Positions 2,976 through 63,886 of a stretch of DNA of 64,000 bases are shown here, piece after piece (the first letter of the stretch is position 1; each line of letters starts with the position of its first letter). This DNA is from Amphiscolops sp. MND2022 (taxonomy: Eukaryota). Made by a program: the position numbers and the translations under genes. The notes below the pieces were generated by a model, which saw only the letters and a program-made list of their open reading frames with translations, was not told where the DNA came from and did not search any database. Location of the stretch: contig OZ076420.1 of the NCBI GenBank assembly GCA_964187785.1, positions 35,402,001 to 35,466,000 of the forward strand. The letters are read 5' to 3'.

Positions 2976-3148
2976 NNNNNNNNNNNNNNNNNNNNNNNNN
3001 NNNNNNNNNNNNNNNNNNNNNNNNNNNNNNNNNNNNNNNNNNNNNNNNNNNNNNNNNNNNNNNNNNNNNNNNNNNNNNNNNNNNNNNNNNNNNNNNNNNN
3101 NNNNNNNNNNNNNNNNNNNNNNNNNNNNNNNNNNNNNNNNNNNNNNNN
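2976..3148. other. Assembly gap (N run, 173 nt)
   Basis: Run of n characters. Confidence 1.
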
Positions 3149-19299: not shown

Positions 19300-22200
19300 G
19301 TGTAATGTGAAATACTCAAATACCTTACCGTTTTCATCTATAAATAAGAGTCCTTTATCTGCGCATTTAGCGTCATCTATTGCACGGTCGTTCTCCGTGT
19401 CCGTCATATGGGCGGAAACGACAGTCAGCGGACCAGAACTGTCTTCCCGGCGAGCTCAGGGGAGAGTTTGAGCCGAGTAGGTTCCTTATCAGCTTTGGGC
19501 TGTGTCCGGACCAAATGTGCCCTTCTGTATAGTGGCGTTGTCTGTCGACTTTTGTAAATCGGGCGTCTGATACCTGAGAACCGGTTCCTCTGTTGTTTGG
19601 GTTCTGCACAATTGCAGCTTTTAGGATACTTACACATCGCATATGTACAATTTTCCCAACTTAGGTGGTAATTGGGAGTTTCCGCCCGATATTGCAATTT
19701 GTGGTTTCTCGGAGTACGGAGAATTTTGACGCATCGAGACTTTTTAGGAGGAAAGATCTATTGAAAATCTTTTTTTTCTTCGGCTTCATGGGTAGCTGGT
19801 CAGAAACACCGCCAGCTTGACTGAATGAGTACACCTGCAAAGTATCAGGTTTCGCTGAAATGAAATTTTTGTTAGTTTTTGCAATATTTCTAACTTGCTT
19901 CTTCAGCAGATTGCTCATTTTGGTCTTTGGTTTCTAGTCACAACAAAGTTCGAAAGCAGATTTTTTAGCCTTGTATTCGGTGTTTTTAGTCGGCGCTTTA
20001 TCCTTTCAAGGAAAATTGTCCAACTATAGCAAAGACCTTTTTTAGTCAGCGCTTCATCTTTTTAAGGAAAAATGCCTGACTATAACATTTTTTTCTTCAG
20101 ACTACAATCTTCACACTGATCGGTCCACTTTTTAGAAACAATCCTGGAACCACCTACGGCTCCAAGTCCGGCCAAGGGGCCAAGGCAAACTTAGTGCAAA
20201 GGGTCCATCCTTTCATTTTTACTTTTTTAACATAACCTACAAAATCGCCCGAGACTAAAGGGTCCCCCCTTTTGATTTTTCTGGGGACTGTGCAACTTTT
20301 TTCGAAATTTTTTAATGTCCCAAAGGGTCCCCCTTTGAGTTTTTTGTTATTTTGCACCAGAATGCATGTTTATAAATCAAAAAGGTCCCCCTTTTACATT
20401 GTTTGGCACTCTGCGACATTTTCCGAAAGATAATAATTTTCGAAAATTTCAAGTTTTTTTCCAAAAAAAGCTTTTGCGCTTTTTGAGCATCAGATATAGC
20501 GCCGTCTTTAGACGTTCTCGTCTTGTTTTCTTCAGACTACAATCCTCACACTGATAGGTCCACTTTTTAGAAACAATCCTGAAACCACCTGAGGCCAAGT
20601 CCGGCCAAGGCAAACTTAGTCCTAAAGTTCCCCCCTTTCATTTTTTACTTTTTCAAGGTCCCCTACAAAACTGGACGGGACTAAGAACGTCCCCCTTTTG
20701 ATTTTTTTCCGCACTGTGCGACTTTTTTCGAATAACTTTTCATCGTCTCAAAAGAGTCCCCCTTCGAGTTTTTTCATAATTTGCAACTGAATGCAGCGCC
20801 GACTTTAGACGTTCTCGTCTTTTTCTAAATATATCTAGGGACATTTCCAAAGCTTTGCTAAACTTTTCGCCGTTTTTGGAAGTGAGTAGACTTTTTGTGA
20901 AGGTTCTGACCCCAGGTTCTACCAGGCCCTTCGCGGTGTGAATTTCGCAGATTATTTTGAAAAAATGAATTTGCGAAACTTTCGGAAGGACCGGACCGTA
21001 AAGGCGGTAGCTTTATCGTCCCAGTGGTTTTTGATAAACCGTTCAGTTCAATGTCCTGTTCGAGAAATCTTACTGCCAATACTTCGTCCGTTGTCGTACA
21101 AAATCTCGCCGCCGGATATTGCGTTCGATGGTTGTCCGATGTAATAGAAATGAATTTCTTCATTTGCAACTTCCAGTGGTGGTAGTCCGCTTTTTCTCTA
21201 CTTGGTATATTAGGTTTAATTTTTTTACCTGACATTTGCAGAGAATGCAAGTATTGCATTTTTTTTCGAAGTGTCTCCATCATCTTCGGCCACCAGAGGT
21301 TGCGCGCTACGAGCACCATCTTGTTGATTCCGGGATTTTCCTTGAGTAGGTTGGCTTTTTGTTGTGGTTTGGAGACTCTTTGACATCACAATTTGTCTTC
21401 TGTACAGGCCAGAACGAACCTGCTGGATAGATTTTCCTCGTTTGATCTAGTACATTTCAAGTATTATTTCGTGCTGTTGTCGTCCCACATATACTAGCGT
21501 CTTCAGTAGGTCTGAATCATTCATTGGAGGTCTCCGTCATCAGTAGCCGCAAGCCTACTGAATAAATTGTTCAGTTTCTCTGACGGCATGCTTGAGATCC
21601 TAATTGTTTGTTTTCTTCTGCAGCTAGTCGAGGGGCTTGCCTCATCGTGACATTTTGGACGCTCTTTACTCCGAACTTTTGTGTCCAATTGATTGCTGGC
21701 ACTTCGAGGTTGGACGAATCTTGGTCCGTCTCGGAGTCGATATGTTCCCCTTCCATGGCAACCGGCATTTACTGGTTTTGTCTGTTTAGGGCTGTTGATG
21801 GTCGTAATCATTTTGTGATGAATGTGGTTATGGTCACTCCGTCTCTTTGAATGGGTGGTCGGTCCACTGTCTTGATTGTAGTGTCTGTTGTTGAAAAATC
21901 TTTCAGCGTTGTGGTTCGCTCTGCTGACGTGAATCACCTGGGCTGCGGTTTCTAATGATTTGCTGTAATCGATCATTGATTACTTTGCGTTCCTCTCGAG
22001 GAATTTTAGTACGTTATGCCTCTTAAATTTTGCTCCGCTCATACCGGGGTTTCCAATCTCTTCCTACGTTCTAATCATTTCTGTGGTTTCAGATGTTTGT
22101 TTGATTGGAGCGATTCCGTTTATTTAACGGCTCTAGTGCCTGGTGATCAGTTAATAATTTTGTTGCCTTACCGTAGACGTACGAACTAAAATGTTGGAGA

Positions 22201-24989: not shown

Positions 24990-26730
24990 AGCTTCGGTTG
25001 GATTTGTGGTTACATTGACATTGAACTGAATTGAAGTGAAAGAAGTCAACCTTTTACATTTTGGCACTCCTGGGTCTTCTGTAAAACGTCTACTGACCGG
25101 ACCTGATCTTTTGGCCGACTTGCCAAAAAGACTTCTCTCCGTTTTCGAGAACCAGAAATCGGTGTCATTGCAGGTATCGAAGACAAGTTCATGCAAACAG
25201 CAATTCGCCTTACGTCTTCTTTGATTGGACGACAGCGTGATTCGCCAGTACCAACACATTCGCCTGATTTGTGGTGCTAACTGCTCACAGTTATGTGCAA
25301 TTTGCGTTCTCCAGAAATGCGCCACCGAACACGCGACTCAGTTCTGGATTTTTATCAAGCCTTCAGAACAAAATTTCTACATGGATGACTTTAATAAGTC
25401 TTTTCGGAATGTGTCAGATGCTTGTAGTCTTACCCAAAACTTACGCAGCGTCCTCATAGCTGTTTTCGTCTCACCAAATTTTTATCTAACAGCTCCGCCC
25501 TAATTATTCGTCTTCCAGGATCCGAGAAAGAAACGCCTGTTCAAACAACCAGAGATCTTGGTCAGAATTGGCGTTTGACTGCTCATCCGACGAAGCCCCT
25601 ACCCACGCCGACAACTCTGCGTCGGCTTTTGAGTTCTATTTTTGATCCCATCGGTATACTAGCGCCCTTCGTCGTTCAAATTGAAATTTATCTACAGTTC
25701 CTATAGAAACGTGGACAGAAAGTGGATCAAATGGTTCCGAACGATCCATCCACATGTATTCACAGATGCCGCTATTTCAGCATTCGCTGCCGTCATTCAC
25801 GCCCGTCCGTCGAAAAACCGCTCACTACAAAACATTCACTTAAGTAATCGGAAAACCGCGCGTCGTCCTTCTCAAACAATTGGGAGTTCCGAAATTTGAA
25901 CTTGAAGCCGCTTTACTGGGAATCCGTCTTCTCTGAGTCGCCCGAATAGCTTTCGATCGAAAATTATCGTTTATTCCTTTCTTGACAGACAATTGTGTTG
26001 TGCTCGACTGGATGCAAAACCAATAAGTTTTGTAGCTCACCGAATTGACCGAACTTCGCGCTCTTCTGCTCCCGAGGATTGTATGTATAATTTAATCCTA
26101 TCTACAGTCAGTCGACCACGGCACAAGAGTTCTGACACAAACAGACATCAACGAGAAATGGACAAAAGGTTCAAGGTTGTCAGTAGAAAACGCTCAACAC
26201 TGGCCAACGTATCCAAACATCTCGTCAGCCGATAACGTTTGCGCATTGTCGAGCGCTAAGAATCCGCTCGTCCTACTTGATTTTCGTCATGGCTCTGCTT
26301 TCTTAAAACGACCGCACAATTCATGCGTTTCATTTGCCGCCTACGCTCTCGAGACTCTGATATAGAACTAATTACCGCTGATTTCCAACTTGCCCGTTTT
26401 CTGCCCATCAGACAGTCACAAGGTGAGTCTTTGTCGTTAACAGTTGCCAACCTCCAATGCAATGATCGTCCATCTCCGCATGAAAAGCATTTGCCGTACA
26501 ATTCAGAGCTCGATGATCAAGAAATTCTTCATTCTGCCGGCCGTCTGAAATACGTACCATTCCCGGAATCAACACGACTTCCCATCACTTTAGATGCTAA
26601 GAATCCGCTCCTGAAACTTTGTGTTGAACATTCGAATGCCGTTTGCCACCACGCCGGTCAGGAATACTTCAAAGCTTTCCTGCCACAACGGTATCTGTTT
26701 ATTGGAGTTCGTTCCGCATTCGCTGCGTAA
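24990..26730 (+). mobile_element. Decayed BEL/Pao LTR retrotransposon pol fragments (RT, RNase H, integrase Zn-finger)
   Basis: LLTGPDLL, YQHIRLICGANCS..CA, NFYMDDF, HVFTDAAISAFAAV and GRL....RLPITLDAK...HHAGQEY match BEL/Pao pol motifs; multiple frameshifts. Confidence 0.85.
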
Positions 26731-27091
26731 GTCACAGATGTTTCGCTTGCGGTAGTTTTCGCTTAAATTTTGTTCGAGTTTGAGTGAATTCTATTTTAAC
26801 ATTGTCTGTCAAAATTCGTTCTCATTTTATATCTTTTTTCATTGTGAATGTCACCAGGCTGTAATTTGCTCAAAACGCTGATTGTGTGGACTCTATTCAG
26901 TCTCACCACGTTCACTACAACCCATATTTTCCCTAAAATCATTTCACCACGGAATCATTTAACCCACGTTCATTTCGCACCGCGTTTTAAATTCACACAC
27001 GCTGTAAATACTTTCATATGTGATTTTATTTTTCCCGCATCCTGTGTGTTTTAATTGTTAAACACAAGCTTTCCAAAAATAATCTTTCCTT

Positions 27092-33541: not shown

Positions 33542-33666
33542 TGGGTGTTCAACCAGGAGGCGGCTGCTTTCCAAGTTTGTGACGTCAGCATCCAGGGTGC
33601 AGATAACTGGCTGCTTTCCAAGTACATTGATGTTTCCAATGCCGACTACATACACATTGATATACT
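33542..33666 (+). CDS. Eph: Eph receptor exon (LBD): WVFNQEAAAFQVCDVSIQGADNWLLSKYIDVSNADYIHIDI
   Basis: TTTTCAG| ... CT|GTGAGT, phase 0 to 2; matches YQVC...NNWL.T..I. Confidence 0.9.
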
Positions 33667-33910
33667 GTGAGTATTAAACACGTGTGCATGTATTTCATGA
33701 ATGTCACATGAATGTTACGCCAACAAATCTTTTTTTCGTTTTTTTTTTTCGAAATTAGATTGTTAGAAAAAATGCGCTCCATTAAATCGGTACTAAAATG
33801 GTAGAGGAAAAAAGCCAAAATTAGTGAGCCAAACACACCTAAGCGCTGTTTCCATAGAAATCCTTGATAGGCAATTTGAAGTTTGATTTGCTTAATATAA
33901 TATTGGGTGC

Positions 33911-34103: not shown

Positions 34104-34785
34104 ATTGGGTGCACCTTCACTGTCAAATTTTCATGAAACTTTTATATTAAATTTACTTAATTGTTTGTAGAACTTCGAGTTCACACATCCGCTGTTTTTA
34201 TCGAATTGTCTCCCGAACAATTGACATCTAGTCCTAATGATTTCGACAGTACATCATCATTATCATTAAATTTCGGACACCAAAATTTCTATCCGAAGTT
34301 TTGATTAAATTAATACATTTGCTTATAAATTCACATACAATTGTATTGTGTACAATTATTTATCAACTGTCGGGTCCACGTATAGATGAAAGATGTCCCA
34401 AATATATAGATAAGATCCAGATTCTTCACTGCGTTTGATCGGCAATCAAATCAAAGTCAGTTCTTGTCCGAAACGTTCAGCGAAAGTCTTCTTTTGAATT
34501 ATAATCCCCTCCATTAAACTGTGTTCTTCTGTGACCTAAAGACCTTAGATTCTCGGTTCAGCTATGTTTGACCCTTTGATGGTGTTTTTACTCAAAACAA
34601 TATTCACATCTACTTCTAAGAATGCTATAAGTAAGAGTATTAGTTTAATTAAAAATTACTGGACGGTGAAAAATCATCATGAAGCAATTTGGGATCTTGG
34701 GGGAAAATTTGAAACATCAAAGATTGAGTTTTCAAGACTGGAGTAATATTGTACCTTTGTTTGTCAAATTGTCTAACTTTGATCA

Positions 34786-35924
34786 GTTCCACAAGGATCA
34801 GTGCTAGGCCCTTTTCTTTTTCTACTGTATATTAATGACCTAGACAATGCTTGCACCGAAAGTTCTTTAACAATGTTCGCGGACGACACGACAGTTATCA
34901 AAGCAGGTCGTAGAACTGATTCTCTTATCCGCAAAGATGTGAAAGTAATGACCCATTGGTTCGATGCTAACAAATTGACAATCAATGTCGATAAATGTGA
35001 AGCGATTCATTTTGGAAGGGGCATACCTGATGAAGTTCAGATCAAAGATAACCATTTACATTACAAACCCTGTTGCAAATATTTAGGTGTTTACATTGAT
35101 CCAACGCTGACTTTCAGAGACCACATAGATTATGTTGTGAAAAAACTGAATAAATTCTGCGGTTTAATTTACCACGTAAGGCATCTGTACCCTAAAAAAT
35201 GTTTGTTAATGTTTTACAACGCGTATGCTAAATCGATCATAACATATGGCTTATTAATTTACGGAGCCGCGGCCAAAACTAATCTATCTAGAATTGAGAG
35301 TGTACAAAGAAGAATTCTACGAGCTATTTTTTTCAGAAAACGACAAGATTCCTTGCAAGAAATACTTGCTGTGAACAAAATCAATACTGTCTACGAGCTT
35401 TTCTTGAACGAAGTGGTTTCTGAAGTTTTCAAAGAAATGAGATCTGATTCTCCATTGAAATTACTAGACTTTGAAAAATTGCCCAAGTCCAACACGACAA
35501 CAAGATGGAACTCCAAAGGAGTTTTCGCTCCAATTGCGTCTCGAACTGTAGTCAAGAAAAAATGTTTAGCAAATTCATTAATGAAAGCTTATAATTGGTT
35601 AACTGAATTGAACCTAATACCCCCTAACTTGCTAAATTTGAGCCAAGAGCAATTGAAAAAACATCTAAAACTTGTCAACGACCTATACATCACTGACAAT
35701 AAAGAACTTTTTTGTCTCTATTTTTGTGCCTAAAACATTTAACCGAGCAAGATAGCATGCAAGTTGGTGCTTCTATTATATGCAAAAAGGGCACTAGCTG
35801 GAAGAGCAATTATGCTCATCTGGTGTCCTAACTGGATAAATTGAATGATAAATAATTATTTGTATTATTTTGTTTCATGCTATCCAGTTAAATAAACTTC
35901 TTCTTCTTCTTCTTCTTCTTCTTC
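34786..35924 (+). mobile_element. 5'-truncated CR1/L2-group LINE (RT C-terminal half, 3' UTR stem-loop, AATAAA, (TTC)n tail) in an Eph intron
   Basis: VPQGSVLGPFLFLLYINDL, MFADDT and KYLGV in an open frame to 35733. GAGCA-ATTA-TGCTC hairpin in the 3' UTR. AATAAA at 35891 followed by (CTT)n to 35924. Confidence 0.93.
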
Positions 35925-40883: not shown

Positions 40884-41133
40884 TTACAAACAACTCGAAT
40901 GTTCCGCGCAACCCAATGCTGTTTCTGGTTGCGACAACACCTTGTCAGTGAAGTACGGCTTCTCAGACCGACCTCAACCCCCCTTGAAACCCTCTGACTC
41001 TTTGACCTCCGACCTGACCCTTCTGGACCACCAGGGACCCCTCCTAAACTCCTGGGACGAGTCCAAGTTCGGGTGGCTTGTTGAGTCCACACTCAACGTG
41101 CAAGACCGCTCCGGTCTTTTTCTGGCCTTCCAG
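40884..41133 (+). CDS. Eph: Eph receptor exon (LBD): YKQLEC...SGCDNTLSVKYGFSD...GLFLAFQ
   Basis: TTTTTCAG| ... CAG|GTACGT, phase 2 to 0; matches FTLRDC...TCKETF.LYY.ESD and GFYLAFQ. Confidence 0.92.
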
Positions 41134-41382: not shown

Positions 41383-41668
41383 GACAAAGGTTCCTGTTCA
41401 ATGCTGCTTGCTATCAACATATACCACTATGTTTGCCCGAAGCAAGTTTTGGGTTTGGCCTGGTTCCCGAAAACGGCCATGGGAGCCAGCGGGTCCAAAA
41501 AACGAGTAGAAGCATTCCACTGTATAGAGCATGCATCCACTAGTAGCGAGAGCGATAAACCCGAAGCCTATTGCAAAAACGGGGATTGGGAATCGAATAG
41601 GTACTTGACCTTTCTCTGCGAATGTGACCCCGGGTACACCCCGAACAGGGAGAACACGATGTGTCTGC
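41383..41668 (+). CDS. Eph: Eph receptor exon (LBD end plus sushi/Cys-rich region): DKGSCSMLLAINIYHYVCP...CECDPGY
   Basis: TTTCCAG| ... C|GTAAGT, phase 0 to 1; matches D.GAC..L.SV.VYY..CP...LA.FP.T. Confidence 0.93.
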
Positions 41669-44600
41669 GTAAGTATTTTCGATTTTTTTTTGATTCAATG
41701 AATTGTATGTTGCCTTTCAGACCCCTGCTCTCAACTTCCAAATTTATTTTCGTAAGTTCAAAAGGTTAATTACAAAATTTAATCGAGCAATAGATTTTTC
41801 ACCGCTGCAAAAATCCACTTTTATTCTACTACATACGGTAGTTTCCAAACCGGAAAATAAAATAAATTTATAGCCTGAGAGATAACTCCATTTTAGCATT
41901 TTTCCATGGGATTTGTGTTATGAAAAACAACTGTTTATACGCTTTCCGTTTTTATCTCATTTTAATGCTAAATTAGACTAATTTAGAATCGATATATAAC
42001 TCATTAATGTCATTTGGGAATTATGTTTTCAAACAGTTGAATTTTATAATAGATGTTGAAAATGTATTCTACTTGTTTATAAACATTTTAATGGCGTCAA
42101 AAAGTTTTCATCACACTAAGCATAAATTTATTGCTTCCACGCTATTGTATTCATATAAATTCAAAATTATGAATTTTCCTCTTTGATCTCAATTTTTGGG
42201 AATTTTAATTAGCGCAAAATTTCTGGAACCTTTAAAAAATGTTTGAAGTACAATTGATTGATTACTGTTCAATCGAAGTTTAATATTATTTATCGCTTTT
42301 GAAAAGTCAGAAAATTTCCCTAATTTCAATATCCTGGCGTCGATTAATGAGGTTCTTGAGAAATTGAAAGATTTATTGATGAATTTTGTCTGCCATCTTT
42401 TATTAGAGTCCTTGTTTATTTGCATTAAAAAGGGAAACATCGGAAGACTTGATGAATTTAGGCGATGGCTAGCCTATGTAACAATGCCCGTTCATTGTGA
42501 TGTTGAGAGTGTTCGCAGTGATGTTGAGAGAAACGCCGTTTGAATATTCACTGTAAATTACGTTCTTATTAGCGCATTTTCACCATCCCTCTTTCTTCTC
42601 GTGAGCCGGGGATAGCAGTTTTGGTTGGAACGTTTAAAACTCTTTTTTAAGATATCAAAGATATTTTTCCCAGGAACTTCCATAGTAGTTCTTTTGAACT
42701 TTTTATGAATTAGGTCCAAAAGTCTGTTTATGCTAAGTTGACCTCAAAATGAATGAATTTTCTTGTATAAAAGTTTTGCAAACTGTGTATAGCTGTGTGC
42801 TGTAACTGAATATACAGAATGTACATTTTTTCCCTTTGTGACGACTTCTAGACGAGAAGTTGAACGAATTTTAATTTTTTATAACTTTCCCATTGAAAAT
42901 GTATGGAAACTGCGCTCGAGTAAACAAACTAATTAATGTACCCGTATAGGAACCATCTGATAAAAATTAACTTTATGTATTGGAAAATATCTTCACAAGA
43001 AACATCTGTTCTATTTCATTTTCGCGTGCAGATGAAATTGTGGGAACTTTTAGAGTCTGAAAGCAAACTCATTTGGATAAAAGCATGTGCATTTGTGCTC
43101 TCAACTGAATTCGGACGCCAATTTCTCAATTCTCCTCAGAGTTTTCCAAACTGGAAATGAAAATTTAAATGGAAACAATTGATAACAATTCGCAAAATAA
43201 TTGAGGAATTTGTTCATGTTTACATTCGCTCGAAGCTAAAAAAAGTGTGAAAAAATCTGACTCAAATATTATTCCACAAAATTTGTTCATTCCAAACGAC
43301 GGAAAATTTAACCATTCCATTCATAACCGGAAATGATAACTTCCAAATATAGTCATTCGAACACAAGTTTGAACACAGAAATCAGTTTAGCCTTCTCAAA
43401 TATATGAGACTATATTCCACTTTCTGATAAATTGACTCTCTACTGATCTAATGGGAGGGCCAGGCGGGGAAAGTTCACGGCTCTTGGTCTGAAAAGTTCA
43501 TGTCTGAAGAGATAATCTTTTAGACTGGAGTTAAAATCGATAGCTAAGACGATGTAACGCGTTCCCTTTATCTAGATTTAGATTGTAGTAAAAGTTCTCT
43601 AAACGCAAGAGTGTAAATTCAATGATAATTCTAATCCTGACTATTCATTCTCTAATTCTGCTCTATTTTAAAGCTTTTTGTCAGAGGTGAATAAAATTGA
43701 AGACCATTCAATTGCGAGAGCCTCTTGGATTGAAAGACGCCAGCCATCAAAATTGAGCATCTAATCTGCCACCAAATGCATTAACGTTCCAGCGTTAATT
43801 CAGCCCACTTTTAATCATGGATCTCAATTGCTCTGCTGTTGTTATCTTTATTTCCCAGTTTTTATTCAACCTTTTTCTGGCTCTCCGTGACACTAGGGCT
43901 GTAACTCAACGCGATGACATGAATGACCGTATTTTCAGACTTTTTTTTCAATCCCGGTGAATTCTTCTGCTTTTCAATTTCCTTCTTTTCACAAATGTCA
44001 ATTATTCCGTTTTTAATTACATTTAACGTCTGCCAGTTTTTGTAAGGAAATTTCCTGTCTAGAACTGACTACTTCAAGAGCCTCTAGAGTCGACAAGCCA
44101 TTCATGCCATTTCAATGCTGGACATTAGGAAATTAATGCAAATTAAGGAAGCACTGGTATATACATGTAGAATAAGCGTCACTAGTGCACACACTAACGA
44201 ATATTAATGGAAAATTTTAAAATATATAAATGCTAAAACTAGGAGTTTTCATGACCTATAATGCTTCTTTTGATGTATAATCATTAGTTATCATAAGTGT
44301 GGTTTTAATAAAACTTGTAATTTGTTCAGCTTGTTTTTCACATTGCAACCAGGGAAAACTCAATAGTTTTTAATTGGCTAAAAGCTGTAACGAATTTATT
44401 TTGCTCAGCTGAATTAGACCAGGGTTTAAGTTTTATGGATTTGAGAAAATGAGTTTGATTCCGGTTTAATAGTCCTAGGATAAGCTTCACCCGTTGACCT
44501 CATTTCGCCCGCTCTGCTTTCAAGAAGCTTCGCTGATTAAGTTAAGCTGAGTGGACCTTCATTCAGACCAGAATTGGTTCGAATATGTAGAATCTATAGA

Positions 44601-45446
44601 ATTTGGACACAGTAACTGTAAAGGTTTGTGAAATTCAAAAGCGGGTTGCTCTAATAGAAATGCTTACATTGAAGTATTTGTTGTGCTTACAAAGAGAGGA
44701 ATCTTCTTATTCCTCCTCAAGTAAAGGCTGCGTTTGGTCTGTGTTTGGAAACGCAGAGGCTTAAACTCATCGATGTTTACATACTACTATGCTTATTTAT
44801 CTTACTGTGGTTACATAAACTTACATACTGGGAAGAATTGAGGAACCCCTGCTTGTAGCACCCCAAACATGCCCCCCCCCCGAATCCTGGAATCCTCCCC
44901 TGTAGGATATAATGGCACGTGACCAAAACTCTTACACAACGCCTTTGAGTGATTCTTTACTCTTAAACTCAGGTCTTCCTTCTGTCTCTCAGTAGGTAGT
45001 CGTCTCCAAGTCTGTTTTCTGTTGCTAGTCTTAATGTCTTTATTTATAAAATCTTGAGTAATGCTCTGTTTAAATACACAAGACTCCACACGATTGTTTG
45101 TACCTTAGTGTGAAAAATGACACAAAATATCTCATTTGTAAGAAACACAATCCACAGGAAGCAACATTTTCAAAACCAATACTCCACATTCTTCAACTCA
45201 CTGATAAATATTCATCAATAAGTTGGACCGCATTTCAAATCTAATATTTACATACAAAACGTACATATATATGCATATTCATGTATTCAGGATCTCAACA
45301 TATGCATGAATTCTTCAACTGTCGATCATGTATATTAATATATCTGATAATACATGTATATATTATATCTAATATGTATATACCCAAAGGATTCCTACTG
45401 GGAAAAGCAAAAACCCTGCAAGTGTGATGAAATTTTTCATTTTTAG

Positions 45447-45624
45447 CATGTTCTGTAACAAAGTACAAAAGTCGTCGAGGTAACATGGACTGCAAACCCT
45501 GTCCGGCTAACAGCATTTCCCCGCTAGAGGGCTCCTCAAGTTGTCGATGCAGTTCTAACTTCCACAGAGCCGTCAATGATTCACTTGATACACCCTGCCA
45601 AGCGCCCCCACCGAAACCCATCTT
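45447..45624 (+). CDS. Eph: Eph receptor exon (EGF-like Cys-rich region): PCSVTKYKSRRGNMDCKPCPANS...CRC...PCQAPP
   Basis: TTTTTAG| ... TT|GTAAGT, phase 1 to 2; canonical Eph C..G.YK...G...C..CP.HS....G...C.C...RA..D....PCT.PP pattern. Absent from the ORF track in this frame. Confidence 0.92.
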
Positions 45625-47001: not shown

Positions 47002-47264
47002 GAAGTCGACAGAAGTTCAAAATACTGACGTCACTATAAAATGGGGAACTGACCCTTTGGGTGAACCCGTTGGGTGGTACACAGTGCAGTGCATTCAATG
47101 TGTGAACAAGGTCATCAAAGTGTCCGGAGCCGAAGAGGTCACGCTGCGCAATCTGGATCCAGTCACAGAATACACAATCCAGATATTCTCAGAGAATTAT
47201 CTCACCGACGGCCAGAGAAACATTGCAAACTTCGCCGAAACAAAGTTCACTACAAAAACACCTC
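47002..47264 (+). CDS. Eph: Eph receptor exon (FN3 domain 1)
   Basis: TTTTGCAG| ... C|GTTAGT, phase 2 to 1; VTIKW...YTVQCIQC...VTLRNLDPVTEYTIQIFSEN. Confidence 0.92.
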
Positions 47265-50866: not shown

Positions 50867-53234
50867 ATTATTTCCTCCAGTATTTCTAATGATACCCGGA
50901 ATGAAAAATATTCTCCAGAATGGAAAATAATATCAAAGCTATAAAAAATTTTTTCTTGATTAAGCATTGTATGATCAATTTTAGATGTTTATAGATTGTT
51001 GAATTTTTCACCCTCGGACGTTTTTATAAGCCATTCCAAAAGAAACAACTTTTAGTTGCTCAAATGTCTGACAGGTCAAGCTGTCTTTATAACCCGGCGT
51101 TCTCGCATCTCAGCTTTTGAACTGAAATAACGAACACCTTCTGAAGACCGCACCTATTAACTTTCAATGAGCGTTCGATTACCAATTGAGATTTCTTCTA
51201 TTGTTTTCGAATACTTGTTTCTATCGTTTTAAAACTGTTCTACAGCTTGTAAGATGAACTTTTTTGCTTGTAGAATTGCTTCTTTACTTTACTATCGGGG
51301 CAATAAGGTGTGCTTCGATTGAAACTTTAGCATGCTTTGATTACAGCTTTAAATGATGACGAAATTGCTCAATAAATTTTTTATAACTGGACTAACTTTT
51401 GAGCTGGTTTTCAAGAGGCTGTCCAAGCTTGTCATTTGGAGTGCCAGAGACTAAGACTGATCAGTGAGACTTATAAATCATGAAAAATGTGTCAGCAAAG
51501 AAAAATAGACTCGAATAAAACTGATCAAGACTCAGATTAGCTGTTAAATAGTTGTTAAATGTGGTTGTCAGTAGCACTCTTTAATTTTAGAACCCCTTAG
51601 GCCTCTCTTAAAATCTCCAATCTTCACGGGGACACTTTAAAGTCTCGAATTTGACGAATAAAAACATGCATAAAATGGTTAATAAATCAACGATTTCTAT
51701 CTTTTCAGCGGTTTCAAAAACCAAATCTTAGTGTTTTTCAAATTCACTTCAGAAGCTTGACAAATCAAGGCCATAAAAAGGTCTCGCGCTTTCTCAAACA
51801 TGATTTTATTTTATTTGCCTGGAGAAATTGAAAAAAAAGTTACCAAATTATTCAGTTTCGTCGAAATACCTACCTTGCTAGTTTGAAAGTACGAAAAATT
51901 GGTTGAAATCTTTTTGCACTTGTACTCAAATTACACATTCCAACTTTTTTAATTGAAGAAGAAACTCCCGACCACGATGAAGTACCTTCCTTGAGTACTA
52001 TTTTACGTGGTTGCTTCAAATTTTTGAGTCAGTACACATCGCATCTTTCCGTTCTGTTGACATGTGAATAAGTTTTAACTTCAAACTTCGAAGTCAATCC
52101 GCTGGTTATCGGCAATCCCATTCCATTACTTGAGATGTTTTTTCCTAATTTTATTACTAATACGATGCCAATGGAAAAACGTTTTTTTTTCAAGCTTTAT
52201 AACTTGTCTTTTTGTATCGTAAAATGTGTATTTGCCTAATTGTTAGTCATTCCTTCAGATGACAAATGAGCTAATTTAACACCGTTAATCACTTTTTTCC
52301 ACTGCAAATTGTTTTTCGAGAGTTTTTCACTCACTTCTGTGAGTTTTGCACACTATAAACGCTCAAATAAATAAACTGAAAATGGTGATTAGTAAGCTTC
52401 AATTAATTTTTTCATGCGTTCTTGGTTGACTTGTTTTAAGATTGTTTTAAACATGTCAGATAAATGTGATTGACGTTTGTCTGAAGTGTCAAACATTCAC
52501 ACCCCCCGTTGTCAGTACACAACAGCTAGTACTCAATTGGAGATGTCTAATGCGAACAAATTCACGCCGCCGGTGACTCGCTAATTTAGCTGTTAACTTC
52601 GTGGGCTCATGTACCTTTTTCAAAGATGCCTCAAATGTGCTCAATTAATTGAACACTTACCAATGGTTTTAATAAGTTAATGAACGTCTAAGAGGTCTCC
52701 TTCGTTTTGTTTCTCTCAGAGGACGAGAACAATGAAGTTTATTGAATAGAAACATGTTTTTCAAAGTAATAATGAAGCCAATTATTAGCCAAGAAAGGCT
52801 GAAACCCTCTGTGCAATGAAAGTACTGAATGTTGACAGAAAACGACAAACTGACTCTTATTTAAAATTTCTTCATATTTTCGAAGTAGTCAATTTCAATC
52901 TTCAATCTTTGACCGTTTATTTCAGCCTAATTCTCTGAATTTTAAAATTTTTTCCAAACTTGATTTTTATAGAGCGAGATAAGTTTTTTCAAGGTCTAAC
53001 TAATATGTCGCCCGCCCTATATCGGAATTGGCATATCGGACAATTCCAACTCTGATCGATTATATACACGAATTTCACAGCTTTGAAAGGTAACATAATT
53101 TTTGAAAGGTTGAATAGAAACTCCATAATCTTACATATTTGTACTTCAACTTAACTCTTTAAACAAAAGTAGTTATCAAATTTAACGTGTTTCTTCAACC
53201 CTGTAACTTATCTCTTCTGCTTTTCATGGTTTAG

Positions 53235-53399
53235 CAGTGGTAGGCAACTTGACGGCGACGCAGAGTAGCGACCAACAAACCATTGCCCTCCAGTGGACCA
53301 TCTTCCCAAAAATGGTGACTGAATACGAGGTGTTTGTCTACCGAAATGACAATCTGGAAGTCATCTATGGGACACAGCAGACATCATACGAACTGCCCA
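53235..53399 (+). CDS. Eph: Eph receptor exon (FN3 domain 2, N-part)
   Basis: TTTAG| ... A|GTAAGA, phase 1 to 1; IALQW...VTEYEVFVY. Confidence 0.85.
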
Positions 53400-53540
53400 G
53401 TAAGAACTTCCTAAATCATTTCTTTCATGCACCACTTTGATCACTACTTTTTTAAAGATGAGATGTATGAATCTCATTTCAAAAAAAGTAGTGAAAAAGT
53501 TCTGTAGTCTCTATAGTTGAGGGAACTATAGTAAATTATT

Positions 53541-54738: not shown

Positions 54739-55552
54739 GTTGGTATGAAATTTCCGAATGCAATTCTTGAAGAGACCTAATTTTCATGCTACCTAAGTTT
54801 CATGCTACTTGGAATTTTTCAGCTAGGGGACTGCTGAAGAAAGTTGAAAATTTTATTGAATTGTTTTGCTTCTGAAAAAGGTGATTGACAATTTTTGGTG
54901 ATTTCAAAGGTTTTCGAGTTTTTGCCTCAGTCTGTGTGAAACATTACTATTCTAATGCTACCTATTGCCAGCTTCAGGCGCTCCTAAGTATAAAAAGTCC
55001 ACATTTGCAAAAATTGCCGTTCAAGGCTGCCCGTGTTGACATCCCATGCATTTCCATGCATGATCATGTAAAGTCCATGCTTGCCACGCATGGTCAAAAC
55101 AAGGCACATCAGGGAGTCGCTGTTTTTCGAAAAGTTTCAAAAAACAAAAAAAATCAAAACTTGTTTAGTTTTTGCGCTTCACATGGTGGGAAAACAACTT
55201 GAAACATTTCTGTTTTATGTGGTTTTAAAAAAGTCAAAATTTTGTTTAACGCGTAATTCATCCTACATTTTGGGTTCAGTTCAGTAACTATCTCGCCACC
55301 AAAAAATCTAGAAATTCCTCTGGTATATATATTTTAACAATTTCTATGTGTCCTACTATCAATGGTAGAAAGTCCCGCTAGGTTTCAGTTGATTTCTATG
55401 TGAAACTGAGATTCGTGAAAAACTCATTCGAATAAAATTATGCATTATTCTTCATTAATTTGTTGAGTATTATAAGGTGCTTTTTGATGCTTTTAACTTT
55501 TTCGGACTCTTTTCTTGGTTAGTCTATTCACGTTTTTTGTTCTTTTTTGCAG

Positions 55553-55780
55553 ATCATCAAATGTGGACAGGTATGAATCCACGCAGCCTAGTGCTAGGAG
55601 CAGCGATGATCATGGCTGTTATCCTGGTAGTGCTGATTCTACTTCTCACAGCCGTCTGGTGCTACAAAAAGAGTCACCCTCTTGACATGAGTCAGATGCA
55701 CCCTGATTGGTCAGGTCACAACAAGTACACTCTGGGGGGGCTCTCTCACGTTCCACCCATGGGGGCACCTTACTGTGAAG
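55553..55780 (+). CDS. Eph: Eph receptor exon (transmembrane helix plus proximal juxtamembrane)
   Basis: TTTTTTGCAG|, phase 1; LVLGAAMIMAVILVVLILLLTAVWCYKK is a TM helix with a basic stop-transfer. The 3' end is placed at a GC donor (AAG|GCGAGT, 55781); an alternative weak GT donor lies at 55715. Confidence 0.85.
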
Positions 55781-55905
55781 GCGAGTTTGTTGCAGAACAT
55801 CCTTGTATATAGATGTTTCCATTCGTAATCGATTCTCGTTTTTTCCGCCTATGAAAATTTACCCGAAGTTAAAAGTGGGCTTATTGCTGTTATTTTTGAA
55901 ATGAA

Positions 55906-56364
55906 AAACAAGCCGAGAACGGCCAAAGTCGGCGCTATATCTAAGGCTCAAAATTGTGAAAGGGGGGACCCTCCGGGCTTTGTGAAACTCCAGCTGGTTG
56001 CAAAATATGAAAAAAAAATTGAAGGGGGACCCTTTGGTGACTTTAAAAAATTTTTGAAAAAAGTGATTTTTGAATCGTGTCACAGTGCCGAAAAATGTAA
56101 AAGGGGGACCCTTTGGGATTTTTTGACATCCATTGTGTTGCAAAATATCGAAAGAAATGAAGGGGGGACCCTTTGGTGCAATCCAAAAAATTTCAAAAAA
56201 AAGTCGCATAGTGCTGAAAAAAAGTGGGGCTAAGGTGGGACCTCCATAGTTCAAGTTGTTGAACAAATTAACTGAACAAAAAAGTGGACCTTACGCGTCT
56301 AAAAAAAACTACCCACTGTAAGAGTCGGGCACATTTTCTACTAAAATGCGCCGACTAAAAAAGG
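55906..56364 (+). mobile_element. DINE/HINE (Helentron)-like non-autonomous element
   Basis: Starts AAACAAGCCGAGAACGGCCAAAGTCGGCGC. Subterminal inverted repeat AGTCGGCGC (55927-55935) / GCGCCGACT (56348-56356); internal AAGGGGGACCC repeats; same family as 19960-20824 and 50690-50866. Confidence 0.72.
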
Positions 56365-56662: not shown

Positions 56663-56791
56663 GCGGAGCCATTCCCTACGGCCAGTCGTTCATCGATCCC
56701 AGTTTCTGCGAAGAACCCGAAAAGTTGCTGTTCGAATTCTCGCGGGAGATTTTTCTGGAACAAATTCAATTTTTCAAGGAATCTCACAACG
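56663..56791 (+). CDS. Eph: Eph receptor exon (juxtamembrane to kinase beta1): GGAIPYGQSFIDPSFCEEPEKLLFEFSREIFLEQIQFFKESHN
   Basis: CCAATTACAG| ... G|GTAATT, phase 1 to 1; aligns to YxDPxxYEDP..A..EFAKEI....I.IEKV. Not in the ORF track. Confidence 0.88.
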
Positions 56792-59700
56792 GTAATTACC
56801 TTCCGCCATGAAATCCAATTATCAGCAAGTGGCCGTCGCCGACTTGCCTCGGCTATTTCAACTTTCCTCGTCCTATTTCTACTAACTTTTGATTGGTCAT
56901 CGAAACTGAAAATTCAAACTATTTAGACAAAACACGCGCAAAGCAGTCTCTCTTTTTTCGAATACAATTCTAAAATTAACCTGGTCTTGTTTTACATTTT
57001 TTTAAGGTTGTCAATAGTTTTCCTGCACTTTTTGTCTGTTCGAATTTTCCTGACGCCGTTAATTGGATTTCATGCATTCAGTATTACATATGTACTTTGT
57101 ATAGCCATTCTGCACTCAAATCATTAAGGGGCTACCCTCTGGGGACGGGCCGGTTATTCTTTCCCCCTGATTTTGGGGAATGAACTAATTTGGCTGCATA
57201 GTTTATCCAGAATTGTGCTGCCATGCTTGATAAGTTCTGCATGAATGATGATTACCAATTTGACTCTTTGTTTTCAAAATATAAATCAACTTGTAACTTT
57301 TAATTAAATTCCAAAAAGTCGCTGAACTGGAGTAATAGTTGCAAGATGTTAAAATTTCCATCACCAAAGTTGGTCGATATTTATTCTAACTTGAAAAAAA
57401 ATGGTAAACGGAGTTGAGTTTTTGATTGCCCGTTTTCTGCACTATGATATGAAAAGTTTTTCAAATACTCATCGAAAATACGGCCGAATTTCATGTTTTT
57501 AATTTGAATGACCAAAAAATTGATTTTCTAATATGAAGAAATCATCCATAAGTTTTCAAAAATTTAATAATGTTTTGGAAAAAAAAGCTGAATAAAAAAT
57601 AATACAAAAAACTGCTAAATAATTGATTCTAACGTCCTATGAAGCCGACGTAGCATGAAAACTTTTGAATTTTGAATAGTGATAATACTGTCTCACTTTT
57701 CAATACACAGCCGTATTTTTTCCTATGACTGAATTGAGTTTTCAAGACTTCCAGATTTCAGCTTTTGTTCATGCGGACGAATGAATTTTGGAAAACAATA
57801 AATTTTGTGCTTCAGTGATCTCTGAAAATTCAATATGGTGTGAAGTATCTCACAAATTTTCACAAAAAGTTGTATAAACAAGTTACAAAAGAAAAGCGCG
57901 ATCGATAAAGTGCTTCTTAGAGCAAATTGAAAAAGGGTTACAGTATGAATTGAACTTTTTCTCAAAAGTCGCAACAGTGTGTTGATAATTTCTTTAAACA
58001 AAACACTTTCCGTTTGAAGCGGAATTCAATAGGACCTACACCCGTTTTTAGTCTCAAGCTCCTAAAAGCTGTCGCCGAAAAGTTGTTCAACTTTCTCTGT
58101 CCTTTCTTTCATGCCAGCAAAACCAGATGTGCAATTATCTCACTTTTTGTGTTTGTACGACGTTCGTAATTCTTATTATGATAAATAACTTTTCGGGACG
58201 CCATGTATTCAATTTGAACAATTCTGGTTACTATTTCCTATTTTTAATTAAGTTTCTTCCAACTTTTTTCAATTTTGATTCCATTATGAATCATATGCTG
58301 TTGTGTAATCTCAAATATGCGGAGCAACTTACGATGAAAATGCTTTAGTTACTTCTGTAAGTTATCAACGCAATATCGACCAAAAAGCTCAACAAATATC
58401 AATTGCCTTGAATCGGCATCTTCGAACGAAAAGTTAGCAAAATTAAGATGGCATTGTGACTTGATTTTGTCTAGGATAGAAAGAGGTGAAAATTTCATTT
58501 TTATTACACCATACCTATAGAGCTCTAAATGCAAGAGTGAAGCGACGTGCCACTACCTGACCAGCGGAAGGTTTTGGCAAAGTCAACCTGGAGGGGCGCA
58601 AAGCGCCCTGGAAGGAGGAAGGCCGAGTCATACAACCAATTTTGGTTTCTAAATTCATAATGACATTATCATTTTCTATACTGTATATTTCGATTCTTAA
58701 TACTTAGACTCTAGATAGACAACTGCTTATTTGTGCTTTCGAACCCATTCCATACTTCTCCCTTTATAACTACTTTAAGTCGACTTTAAGTTAAGTTAGC
58801 AAATTTCAAGCCATTGATTTCAAAAAGAAAAAACTTAAACTTTGAATCTTCATTTAAGGGCTAATTACTCTACAAAATCAATCACAATGATTTAAAAATT
58901 GATTTTTCTGAAAAGGCGTATAATACCGGAATTTTGAACTAGGAAATCGAAGCTTATTTCCATCAGATTTGCATATAGATTTCCTGAGCTATACTTTCTT
59001 CAAATAAGTCTAAACACTTTGAGAGAAGATATCTAGTTAAAACTTGCCTGCAAGTTAAAAATATTTCACATGTTCATGTAGCACTACCCTTAGATTTCAG
59101 AGCTCGTTTTTCATGAAGTTCTCCGTGCGATCAATCATACTAGATTTTCTTACTTCATGAAAATACACAGTTCGATAAACGCATCTAGTATATTTTACTT
59201 TTCTTCCACTGATAGTTCAACTATATCCAGTTTTATTTCGCAATTTTTGATTTATGGAAGCCTAAACGACACACAGGTCTCATAGGGGCGTGTCCAATAT
59301 TGTACTTTGTTATTAAAAATGTCATTTTTTCTTGGGAGAAATCGGGTAATTGTAAATTGGACCAGCCTGTAACTCCCGTTAGATTGCAAAATAGGCGATA
59401 TAGGTGCCTGCCTAGTAATGAAAAGAGAATACGAAATTTAAGTTGTATATTTTTATGATCACGTCCAACTTTCAAATAAAAAAGTTATCAGCGATTGAAG
59501 AAAGAAAATATGTAGTGTTTCTTTTTTTTCTAACTAATTTTTTAAAACTTTAAACTAAAGTTTGATTTTTACATTGTCGAAAAGTCCGTTTTCCATTTTG
59601 TCGACGCTTTTTTTCGTTTTTTTTTGTGAATGTTTTTTGGAAGTTTGATTGCGAGTTTGAAATGATAACTCGTCGAAATTTTTCAAGTCAATTTTTCTCA

Positions 59701-62700
59701 TACTTTTTGAAACTTCCTTCATACGATCAAACCTGATGATCGATCTTTATTCTGAATAAATTATCATAAATACACGTTGGTATTTATATGAGCTGGATCA
59801 ACGGTTTACGCAGAAAAAAATTAACAGTTTTCGCTTATTTTCACCACAACGCTCAATGAGCTGTGTTTAGCATTGACAGCGTTTACAATAAAACATTGAT
59901 CATTAGGCTTTGGAATCAAAATTTATGGGAATGTTTTAACATTACGAGTTGTTATGGGAAAAGCCAATCTTAGGCAGTATGCCCAATCCCAGTATGCATC
60001 AGAAATTTTGTGAATTATTCCTGAAATATTTTAGCAACTCAAATGAAAGAATGAAACCAGTAAACTTATGCCGACGAAAAGGTTCGATAAATTGTTCAGT
60101 TACAGAGTGTATTGTTTATCTAATTTTTTTTCTAAAATACCAAAGTTTTGACATAAATGTACTTTCCCATTTACATACAACCATGGAATCAAAATAATTT
60201 AATTTCGTCTTCGTCTTAGTTTAATTTCGCATGGCAAAAATTGTATTTAAAAGTGTGAAAAAAAAGTGTCGAAAAGTGAAAAGCAACCGATGATTTTGTT
60301 CATTTTAAACTCGCCTCTTGGTTCTTTTTGCCACTCACCGACTTTTAAGATGGCTTATCTAAACAACGTTTGCTCGACTCGCTTTTGCATTATTTTTTTC
60401 AAATCACAAGAATTTGATAAGTTGATCATTCAATACAACAAGAGTTGGTAAACAACTCATTAAGTTTGGTGCTCAGGCCATAAAAGTTAATTAGTTGATG
60501 AAATTTAACTTTCAATTAAACCATGGCAAGTTCTCCTTTTAGTTTTTTTTGCCGCAAACTTGTTTATTGAACTTTTCGGGTGGTTTTCTAATTGAATTTT
60601 CATCAAGTTCAAAGGACTTTTTAAGAATAATTTGAGTAGATTTGTAAAATTGAGGTAATAAAACGATTTTACCGGTATCATTTTCTATCAGCAATACCTC
60701 CCTCGACTCATTTAGTGGTCATAAAAATTTCAGTTTTCTTTAAAAAAATTCATGTCCCAAAAGTCAGTCATGTTACTATGAAAACCACTTTGGAATGGTT
60801 GTTATGTACAGAACGGTGATTAAGAAATGGTCCGTCCGAAAACCAATTTCAGGCTTAAAACCATGAACAAGTTAACGACGCTCAGTTCACAGAGGGACGA
60901 ATTTTATATCACAATACTGTATTTTCAAAATGGGAGTTTCGATGATCTAAGTGAATCCTATTAAAAAAACCAATGAACAAGTGAAGCGAAGGCTCAAAAA
61001 AGTAGGAAAACGAAACAAAAACGGTCAGTTGAAAAATCTTTTTTCCCGAAATAGGTTTAATGGCACTTTTTACGCTATTGGGAAGTTGGTCAATGTATAT
61101 CCTTCTCTCTAGCACCTCTGTATTTGTTGAAGTGTAAAATATAAACTTATTTTTACAAATATATAATTCATACGTTTCTCCCACTGTTGCCAAACTACTG
61201 GCCGTTGTTCACAACAGGAATTATATTTTCACACATTTCGGACTATAATGAAGTTATCAAAAATTCAGCGAAGTCAAATAGATTGTAAGTTCTGAGACCA
61301 GGTACAATAATACCCGGCTCCTGGATAAGTTTTCACACCTGGAACTGTGATTATAAGTAATTTCACGGGGGATTTCCCAGATTTTGACTGAGTTTCCATG
61401 GTGCTCGAGTTTATGAGCAGACTGAATTTACTTTTATTTGATTTGCAAACACTATTTAAGCATTTTTATAAATAAGTTACTAAAATTTAATGGTTCTTGT
61501 TATTTTCCGCCCATATTTCATATGGGAAAGGAAAATATTTAAATCAAACGGGTTTTTTTTTTTTTTTTTTACAAAATTTGCCAAGATTTTATTTATATTT
61601 AAATTTAAGGGTGTTACCCATAGAATTCAACCCACATAAATTTAGCTTCGTGCGATATGTATTTGTAGAGATTTTTGAAGTTTTTTTTAAAAATGACGAA
61701 AATGACGAAAATGACCCCTTAATGACAAAATTTTTGCCATTTTTTGAGACACCGCGAATTAGAAAAATGGACAAGATGAATCGAAGCTTTCTTTTCTTCG
61801 AACTTCTCAGCGTTTTTATAGTGCATTAGTTATTCTTGAGCCTCAAATTTATGTAGTTGTAGAACAGTTCGGGGCGGAAAATATCCCGCTCCTCAGCGGG
61901 CGTCTTGTTCTAAAATTTTAAAAGTTTTTTTGCAAAAATGTTTAAGCGAAAATTCAAGCACTTGATTGCTCTTATATGTGCGTTTATTATCCTTAAGTTG
62001 GCCAGGAAAAATTTTGTTCCATCCAAAAATCAGATGCTTCAACTTTAAACCGCAATATCTCCTGAACTATACAAGTCCGACAAACGATTTATACAGCGTT
62101 CAAAAGAGGAGCATTGGGGCTTTCAAATCAATTTTTAAACTGCTGGGCTTGGGGCACGCTAGCTCGGGCCCCTTGCGCGCAATGTTTTTTGCGCGAAGTT
62201 CTCCGCTGGCGTGCGGCTTCGCCGCACTGGCTCCGAACTTTGCGCCAAAACTTTGCACGCGTCGTGTCTCTGCTTGCTTTCCAGCATGTTTCAAAACATG
62301 CTTGGGCCGCTTTGACCCAATGTTGATACCCGGTATGTGATACCTGGGCCAGTGGGATAAAAGGGGCACAAACGAAAACTGGGAAAACGGAAAGTCTGCA
62401 CTTATTTTTCTTTTGATTTTTTCGCCTCATTTTCTGGATTTTGGAGACATCACGTCAATTTTCCGTGAAAAGGCGCCGAATGCTATGCAATATTGTCTGA
62501 AACTCTTATTAAAGGGTTTGCTTTACCATACAATCAGCTGGTGCGTTAAGAATTTGCAGAAACTAAATGTGCCAAATTTGGCACATTGGCCAAGTTAAGG
62601 TTAAGTAAAAATTAGGGCTGTAATTGTCATGAAAAACCGTTGTAAATTCACTCATAAACATACATCATATTTTTAATATATATTATTTAATCGATTATCT

Positions 62701-63173
62701 GTGAATCAATTCAACTTTTCCGCGGAATCAAAAACTCAGATTGTTAAACTATGGAAAATCGTTTCGAAAAACGGATAAACATGATTGGAAAAGCTTTTAA
62801 AAATTTCAATTTGGGCAACATTTCAGCTTTGGTAGGTAATTTACTTGGTTTTCCTTTTTATTTTTAAAAAATTAGTAATTTCATTGAAGCTGACGAGTAG
62901 TAACGACTCTAACAAAGCATCAAAAACTGTGATGGGCCCAGATCATAATATTCTTGTTAATCCGGGTTATAACTTCATCAGGGACAGTCGATTTTCAATA
63001 ACCATTTTAATATCCATCATAACCCCGTATTTGTATCACAGATAAATAAAAAACGTTAGCAAAAATAGAGATTGTCGAAGTTCATTGTAGCGAAAACGTT
63101 CGTAACATGTGGCAATATCCACTAAAAGCGGTTGTGAATATGATGTAATAATGACGTCATTTTGGTGTTTCAG

Positions 63174-63361
63174 ACGATGGTGGGTTCAAGGCCACCTCGA
63201 CTGCGTGTGGTCAACAGGTGTGCAGGGCCACTTTGCATGGTACTGACAATCAGAGCTGTGCTGTGCTCGTCAAGTCCATTCATGATTCAGACTCAGAGAG
63301 TGTGCGTAGCACCTGTATAGAAGCCGCAATCATGGCACAATTCAATCACCCCAATGTCCAG
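63174..63361 (+). CDS. Eph: Eph receptor exon (kinase subdomains I-IV)
   Basis: GTGTTTCAG| ... CAG|GTAAAT, phase 1 to 0; QVCRATL...AVLVKSI...EAAIMAQFNHPNVQ matches EVC.G.L...VAIKTL...EASIMGQFDHPNI. Confidence 0.92.
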
Positions 63362-63700
63362 GTAAATTTCCATCAATTTTTTTCTCTGAAAATGTAATCC
63401 TTCGAAGTTTTCCGGATTAATATTTTTGACATTTTTTTTTGGCTAAACTTCTAAATTTTGCCGAGAGAATTTGCTAAACTAGACAACCAACCAAATAACC
63501 ATTAGCGGTACATAATTTCAATTAGAAAATGTTCACTAGCCGCAGATCGAACTTTTTTTGCAATTCTTCATAGTGATCGCAACACTTCCTTCAAAAAAGG
63601 AAAAACACGATACTTTCATTTTTGCTAACTTTCCAAGTTATTTCTTTTTTTTTTATGTTTTAAAAAAGCGTCTAAAATTTAGAAAAAACCGTGGTTTTAG

Positions 63701-63886
63701 ATGCTACATGGCACTGTGGTCCAGAGCACGGAGCTGATGATCTGTGTGGAGTACGCTTCCCAGGGTCCCCTCAACAACCTGCTGCGGGATAACCCCACCC
63801 ACTTTTCCCTCATGCAACTCGTACATGTGCTGAGGGGCATCGCATGTGGCATGCAGTACTTGTCCGAACTGGGATTTGTTCACAAG
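63701..63886 (+). CDS. Eph: Eph receptor exon (kinase subdomains IV-VIa); gene continues beyond the window
   Basis: GGTTTTAG| ... AAG|GTAAAC, phase 0 to 0; LHGTV...MICVEY..QGPLNNLLR...FSLMQLVHVLRGIACGMQYLSELGFVHK is the Eph-specific F...QLV..LRGIA.GM.YL..VH motif. Confidence 0.95.

Follow-up and report, generated by a model that had tools for sequence, protein, structure and literature searches.

A predicted pseudokinase Eph receptor in Amphiscolops sp. and the shared loss of catalytic motifs among its paralogues

The stretch of 64,000 nucleotides that was analysed here (the window; positions 35402001-35466000 of contig OZ076420.1, below C12, in assembly GCA_964187785.1 of Amphiscolops sp. 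MND2022) carries exons of a gene for an Eph receptor, the downstream exons of which follow just past the window end. Very probably, this gene encodes a full-length Eph-type receptor with a conserved pseudokinase that is unable to transfer phosphate, with a catalytic loss that occurred a single time and preceded the growth of the family to at least 12 genes, and with a presumed role as a scaffold or switch, or as a ligand. Eph receptors are the largest family of receptor tyrosine kinases, and it has long been debated to what extent Eph function needs the kinase. We also read the 30 kb that follow the window, and coordinates beyond 64000 extend the window scale.

Results

We define a pseudokinase operationally as a kinase fold in which one or more of three residues are lacking, namely the VAIK Lys, the HRD Asp, and the DFG Asp. 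Two of these three are missing in the C12 Eph gene, and from the set that characterizes a competent kinase (GxGxxG, VAIK Lys, HRD Asp, and DFG Asp) the Lys alone is present. The original prediction, which was made on the letters of the window, had named the retrieval of the next exons as a check, and these exons (D, E, and the last exon; Table 1) could be read. Exon D starts with VLFSGNVLLTGSSVAKISGFDMRTMLEVEEMNGAKPNIFGALMPWLAPEV, and exons C and D joined give V-H-K-V-L-F-S-G-N, whereas the canonical sequence is V-H-R-D-L-A-A-R-N. HRD is thus changed to H-K-V, with a Val in place of the catalytic Asp, and the catalytic-loop Asn is kept. Further on in exon D, ISGFDMRT lies on VSDFGLSR in the alignment with EphA8, which means that DFG is changed to G-F-D and that the Mg-binding Asp is lost. 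The activation segment contains no Tyr, and the APE motif is kept. A PF07714 match spans exons B to E, and the junction of exon E with the last exon, which adds the SAM domain and the VHIII tail, is in frame (GA/gtacgt ... ag/G). With the Gly loop gone as well as the catalytic Asp and that of DFG, the signature is clearly that of a pseudokinase, and the domain is predicted to be unable to transfer phosphate. The pseudokinase reading of the original prediction has therefore been strengthened, as H-K-V and G-F-D now stand beside the lost Gly loop.

Inside the window, exons A, B, and C translate as had been claimed, and the Lys codons of VLVK (63272-63274) and VHK (63884-63886) lie at the positions given before. 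Exon A encodes the juxtamembrane segment GAIPYGQSFIDPSFCEEPEKLLFEFSREIFLEQIQFFKESHN, which ends with ...FFKESHN in phase 1 before a gtaatt donor, and exon B continues with D-DGGFKATSTACGQQVCRATLHGTDNQSCAVLVKS...IEAAIMAQFNHPNVQ. The spliced N-lobe has a degenerate Gly loop, DDGGFKATSTACGQQ, in which GxGxxG is missing as predicted, and the match to the Pfam kinase profile begins at position 14, that is, C-terminal to the Gly loop. Of the 8-11 extra residues that had been proposed, an insertion of that order is found, with the figure being approximate, as the Pfam profile positions give an estimate of about 6 to 10 residues before beta2. In the alignment of exon B to PDB sequences, QVCRATL corresponds to beta2 of Ephs (EVCRGRL), VLVK to VAIK, and IEAAIM to SEASIM, and the beta3 Lys and the alphaC Glu are thus kept, again as predicted; the Lys of VHK, with which the catalytic loop had been said to start, aligns with the Arg of HRD. 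The kinase exons are closest to those of Eph receptors: the PDB alignments involve EphB4, EphA3, and EphA8, the best matches of exon B are EphB4 and EphA7, and for exon C the top 43 matches are all Ephs (E 3e-13 to 6e-10), with ALK following as the next family (3e-6). Exon A alone gave no match when compared with the PDB. It contains an Eph juxtamembrane motif of the xIDPxxxEDP type, C-terminal to the transmembrane run, which reads FIDPSFCEEP, with Phe and Cys replacing both regulatory juxtamembrane Tyr (JX1, JX2). Paralogues have FIDPKLCEDP and FVEPKIFDPP in this place.

The original prediction had treated the gene as one odd Eph, and this view had to be abandoned, since the loss extends to the entire Eph family of this genome as found here. 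A census was made by searching the genome with the exons of the gene and with the back-translated Eph motif RG[IV]AxGMxYL. The motif was found 12 times in the genome and not at all in the control, and all 12 matches are followed by H-K, none by HRD; they represent 11 gene loci and one dead copy of exon C. With a further gene whose motif deviates from the pattern, there are 12 Eph-type genes (Table 1). The DFG position is readable in 11 of them; nine have G-F-D there, and G-F-E and G-F-A occur in one gene each. An Ephrin_lbd match lies near seven of the loci. As a control, [YF]VHRDLAARN matches only three times in the genome, always in tyrosine kinases that are not Ephs (one Src-like, two others), and the two of these in which DFG is readable have it in its normal form (L032, L033). 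As these kinases keep HRD and DFG, the change of the catalytic motifs is specific to the Eph family, and as all 12 Eph-type genes share the loss, parsimony suggests that the motifs were lost once, ahead of the expansion that produced at least 12 genes.

Closer to the C12 gene than any paralogue within the genome are two fragments that come from other species, L015 (in NCBI assembly GCA_013332895.1) and L014 (a 434 kb contig from ENA), and we regard them as orthologues. Both have VHK at the same exon end, followed by VL[CT]SGN and K-I-S-G-F-D, both are devoid of GxGxxG, and the C-terminus of L014 is likewise TVHIII. These comparisons bear on the idea that the gene is a decaying, unprocessed pseudogene whose motifs were lost by drift. 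Dead partial exon copies do occur elsewhere, namely a copy of exon B on C13 that contains a stop and an inverted exon C upstream of the window, and they could be taken to favor such a decay. However, every cytoplasmic exon of the C12 gene is open, in frame across the junctions, and bordered by GT-AG, and the ectodomain exons that were found are open as well, with canonical splice sites; identical substitutions are fixed in the two other species and in 11 paralogues; and over 259-319 aligned codons, the nonsynonymous distance to the orthologues (dN) is 0.33-0.35, far below the synonymous distance (dS), which is saturated, with an omega of 0.10-0.24 where computable. In a maximum-likelihood tree, the C12 gene, L014, and L015 have the shortest branches, the C12 branch being the shortest of the family, and the remainder of the tree consists of ten paralogues, whose grouping is weakly supported (86/51). 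Decay is therefore very unlikely, and by these measures the C12 Eph gene is intact and conserved. Other searches for relatives added little: most of what the representative search found for exon D were multi-kinase proteins that are unrelated, with only three relevant fragments (P0005, P0014, P0016) and no Eph gene model among its 150 matches, and a word-index search for further relatives gave nothing new.

The two partial copies can be described as follows. The inverted one (C12:35396570-35397662, minus strand; L019:4570-5662) lies upstream of the window, some 4.4 kb away from its first position, and comprises exon C and flanking intron. Identity is 93.6% across roughly 990 bases and 100% for the exon C protein. 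The copy abuts a piece that matches window positions 62866-62977, the exon B region being deleted, and its surroundings contain no further exon of the gene; it has the appearance of a dead fragment left by a duplication. The other (C13:52022704-52023163, minus strand; L003:1501-2260) is a copy of exon B together with its flanks, with about 82% identity and an in-frame stop (RAT-stop-HG), and is a pseudogenised fragment of the C12 gene on another chromosome.

A different objection would be that the gene model is wrong, and that the mRNA obtains a Gly loop or catalytic loop of normal sequence from alternative exons or micro-exons. The splice junctions are indeed inferred, and the introns are long (6.4 kb between A and B, 1.8 kb between C and D). 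Nevertheless, G.G..G was sought in every plus-strand frame of the A-B intron and was not found, no open reading frame of this intron resembles the paralogue or orthologue loci, and a DLAARN or DFG frame was not detected in the 30 kb downstream. The Gly-less exon B and the HK/V junction recur in the orthologues, whose introns are much shorter and of which L015 even has exons B and C fused. In the paralogues on C6 and C11, a single exon encodes HK and, without interruption, the remainder of the catalytic loop, and the reading of HK is therefore independent of splicing there. The junctions of exons A to C are canonical (...AAC G/gtaatt, tttcag/AC, CAG/gtaaat, ttttag/ATG, AAG/gtaaac). An erroneous gene model is thus hardly to be expected, and we consider it the least probable of the explanations discussed here. 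Within exon B, the sole candidate for an in-frame acceptor is a CAG at about 63217, which is ruled out by a frameshift into a stop.

It is also conceivable, albeit improbable, that the domain still binds nucleotide as an atypical module or retains weak kinase activity, with the Lys-Glu pair and the Asn supporting an ATP switch or residual transfer. Lys (VLVK), Glu (IEAAIM), and Asn (VLFSGN) are conserved in the C12 gene and its orthologues, and HER3 is a precedent for residual phosphotransfer. EphB6, moreover, binds ATP despite heavy substitution (PMC8347583). What speaks against this explanation is that the Gly loop is missing together with both Asp, those of HRD and DFG, that even the beta3 Lys is lost in two paralogues (VITR in C3:3708, VRLR in C4), and that the Gly-loop region is poorly conserved between the orthologues, as expected without nucleotide binding.

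The C12 gene further shows the features of the Eph family outside the kinase fold, namely an ephrin-binding domain, a transmembrane segment with the juxtamembrane motif, and a SAM domain; the family feature that is missing is the pair of regulatory juxtamembrane Tyr. Read from the exons, the predicted architecture is an ephrin-binding domain, a Cys-rich region, FN3, one transmembrane helix, the juxtamembrane segment, the kinase fold, SAM, and a hydrophobic tail. The ephrin-binding domain is partly mapped, and a whole-genome Pfam search gave PF01404 (Ephrin_lbd) with 34.7 bits, over the cut-off, at window positions 33554-33763. The exon at 41383..41669 has matches to Ephrin_CRD (E 4.2e-4), EGF_CA (E 7e-3), and positions 155-176 of Ephrin_lbd (E 0.048), all below the curated cut-offs, and the Ephrin_CRD match is followed by that to Ephrin_rec_like, which is the order found in Ephs. 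The Ephrin_rec_like exon is 41% identical to its counterpart in the C3:3708 paralogue, and the transmembrane exon, whose hydrophobic run sits within an open reading frame at 55459-55809, is 48% identical to that of the same paralogue.

Table 1. Exons of the C12 Eph gene, on the window scale, and Eph-type loci of the genome
Feature	Position	Strand	Remarks
Ephrin_lbd exon	33542..33667	+	E 7.3e-6, profile 35-71; flanks ttttcag/ and /gtgagt
Probable middle exon of the ephrin-binding domain	~40900..41133	+	Open frame and splice signals by eye; end ...LFLAFQ/gtacgt; tentative
End of the ephrin-binding domain and Cys-rich/EGF-like	~41383..41669	+	Acceptor tttccag/; 3' boundary approximate
Ephrin_rec_like (TNFR-type Cys-rich) exon	45446..45624	+	PF07699, E 1.3e-3, below curated cut-off; boundaries approximate
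First FN3 exon	47002..47264	+	Pfam fn3, E 4e-8, 33.8 bits, over cut-off; boundaries approximate
Probable second FN3-like exon	53228..53407	+	Open frame at the expected place, no Pfam match; tentative
Transmembrane exon	55553..55790	+	Hydrophobic run LVLGAAMIMAVILVVLILLLTAVW, then basic residues; 3' boundary approximate
Juxtamembrane exon A	56663..56792	+	Weak Pfam EphA2_TM, profile 49-72, E 0.041; paralogue matches
A-B intron, 6.4 kb	56793..63173	+	No alternative Gly-loop exon
Kinase exon B	63174..63361	+	Pfam PK_Tyr_Ser-Thr from profile position 14; tttcag acceptor
Kinase exon C	63701..63886	+	beta4 to start of catalytic loop; tail LSELGFVHK; PDB Eph matches
Exon D	65706-65969	+	tttcag acceptor, gtgagt donor; VLFSGN..., ISGFDMRT, APE
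Exon E	66502-66695	+	End of kinase fold, Pfam profile 221-258
SAM/tail, last exon	67991-68393	+	Pfam SAM_1, E 1.8e-11; VHIII, then stop
Eph-type locus 1	C12 (window gene)		Motif and HK
Eph-type locus 2	C6:169359xx		Motif and HK
Eph-type locus 3	C3:370852xx		Motif and HK
Eph-type locus 4	C3:555923xx		Motif and HK
Eph-type locus 5	C4:822420xx		Motif and HK
Eph-type locus 6	C11:232940xx		Motif and HK
Eph-type locus 7	C13:143203xx		Motif and HK
Eph-type locus 8	C13:385234xx		Motif and HK
Eph-type locus 9	C1:339611xx		Motif and HK
Eph-type locus 10	C2:130805xx		Motif and HK
Eph-type locus 11	C2:783731xx		Motif and HK
Eph-type gene 12	C3:374061xx		RGIASGMQFF, then HK; outside the RG[IV]AxGMxYL pattern

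Repeats were seen in the introns and upstream of the gene. A frame of 316 codons at 34783-35730 (plus strand), which lies within an intron of the Eph gene and contains a reverse-transcriptase-like ...FADDTT..., is probably the remnant of a non-LTR retrotransposon, and it was also matched in the region of the C6 paralogue. A dispersed repeat with the frames ...KGGPFG... or ...EGGPFGDFKKF... occurs at 19938-20787 and 55829-56246 (plus strand) and in L004 and L011, which are introns of the C6 paralogue; introns of two Eph paralogues thus share this repeat. Overlapping long frames of up to 149 codons at 25000-27000 (plus strand), which lie 5' of the Eph exons that were mapped, have the look of a degraded mobile element, and positions 2976-3148 consist of 173 N, either an assembly gap or masked.

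Discussion

Our data suggest that an expanded Eph family is entirely kinase-dead in this genome and yet has been conserved over long evolutionary time. Since every Eph paralogue that was found shares the loss, there is no active Eph partner that could phosphorylate the C12 receptor in trans, which differs from the situation of EphB6 and EphA10, and Eph signalling in the Amphiscolops genome probably works without Eph kinase activity. We propose that the ectodomain would sense a partner on the neighboring cell and cluster the receptor, and that the pseudokinase with its strongly conserved G-F-D-x-R, the SAM domain, and the V-H-I-I-I tail, which is possibly a class II PDZ-binding tail, would together recruit other proteins, in the manner of a scaffold or of a conformational switch. 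Another possibility is that the main role of the receptor is that of a ligand, with the signalling taking place in the opposite cell.

Several points weigh against this picture and need to be considered. All splice junctions are inferred from sequence and comparison. The ectodomain exons at 40900..41133 and 53228..53407 have no Pfam support, and the mapped exons begin at 33542, with the signal peptide and the first exon of the ephrin-binding domain outside the mapped set. The kept beta3 Lys and alphaC Glu may permit some nucleotide binding, and a canonical Eph with very divergent or intron-split motifs could have evaded the census. Finally, an exon-level search of the genome for ephrin ligands (PF00812) gave a best E of 1.3, which does not show that ephrins are absent; the ligands may have escaped detection because they are highly divergent or split, or else the receptors use another partner.

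A conserved pseudokinase receptor nevertheless accounts best for the combined observations, and a more far-reaching idea can be built on it, which we consider quite possible, if somewhat less probable than its opposite. This would be a bilaterian lineage without any competent Eph, in which one ancestral pseudokinase Eph (H-K-V, G-F-D, no juxtamembrane Tyr) gave rise to at least 12 conserved genes, contact signalling became kinase-free, and G-F-D-x-R was repurposed as an interaction surface, with ligands that are possibly unrecognisable by ephrin profiles. If this is true, the lineage represents a natural experiment on what Eph receptors can do with their ectodomain, pseudokinase scaffold, SAM domain, and tail alone.

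Kinase-independent functions are documented for VAB-1 of C. elegans, and this is a precedent for Eph function without catalysis. VAB-1 and the Drosophila Eph have the same domain order as the C12 gene, but they keep VAIK, HRD, and DFG, whereas the C12 gene has lost the HRD Asp and the DFG Asp. The original prediction had also seen a likeness to the H-K-D motif carried by the pseudokinases ROR1/2, RYK, and PTK7, and this needs to be corrected, as the motif continues to H-K-V and the Asp itself is lost. What is shared with these receptors is an RTK-fold domain with altered catalytic motifs and its use as a scaffold; their ectodomains and families are different.

In the survey of Arcas et al., VAIK, HRD, and DFG were present in the Ephs of every sampled phylum, from sponges to humans, kinase-dead Ephs were traced to Gnathostomata only, and Xenacoelomorpha are not mentioned, the Amphiscolops lineage being outside of the sampling (PMC6993872). 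Our literature search for invertebrate Eph pseudokinases of this kind found no description of any. EphA10, a class A gene specific to gnathostomes (PMC6993872), is like the C12 receptor a kinase-dead Eph without juxtamembrane Tyr (PMC8347583); by its description it differs in that the C12 gene belongs to a non-vertebrate lineage in which all family members are dead.

The closest comparison is with mammalian EphB6, which also has the full Eph architecture and a kinase fold without the HRD Asp, the DFG Asp, and an activation-loop Tyr, and both receptors are thought to be scaffolds or switches within Eph clusters. However, EphB6 has kept its Gly loop and both juxtamembrane Tyr and has lost the VAIK Lys, the alphaC Glu, the Asp, and the catalytic Asn, with RLG in place of DFG (PMC8347583), whereas the C12 gene has neither the Gly loop nor the juxtamembrane Tyr, keeps Lys, Glu, and Asn, and has G-F-D. 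EphB6 furthermore coexists with active Ephs and is phosphorylated by them, and no active Eph was found in this genome. A pattern of substitutions that inverts the one described for EphB6 (PMC8347583) does not speak for orthology with EphA10 or EphB6 and argues for an independent origin, which had been proposed originally and is further supported by the occurrence of the pattern in 12 paralogues and two orthologues of a non-vertebrate lineage. If true, an Eph pseudokinase has arisen here for a second time and independently, with retained residues that are opposite to those of EphB6.

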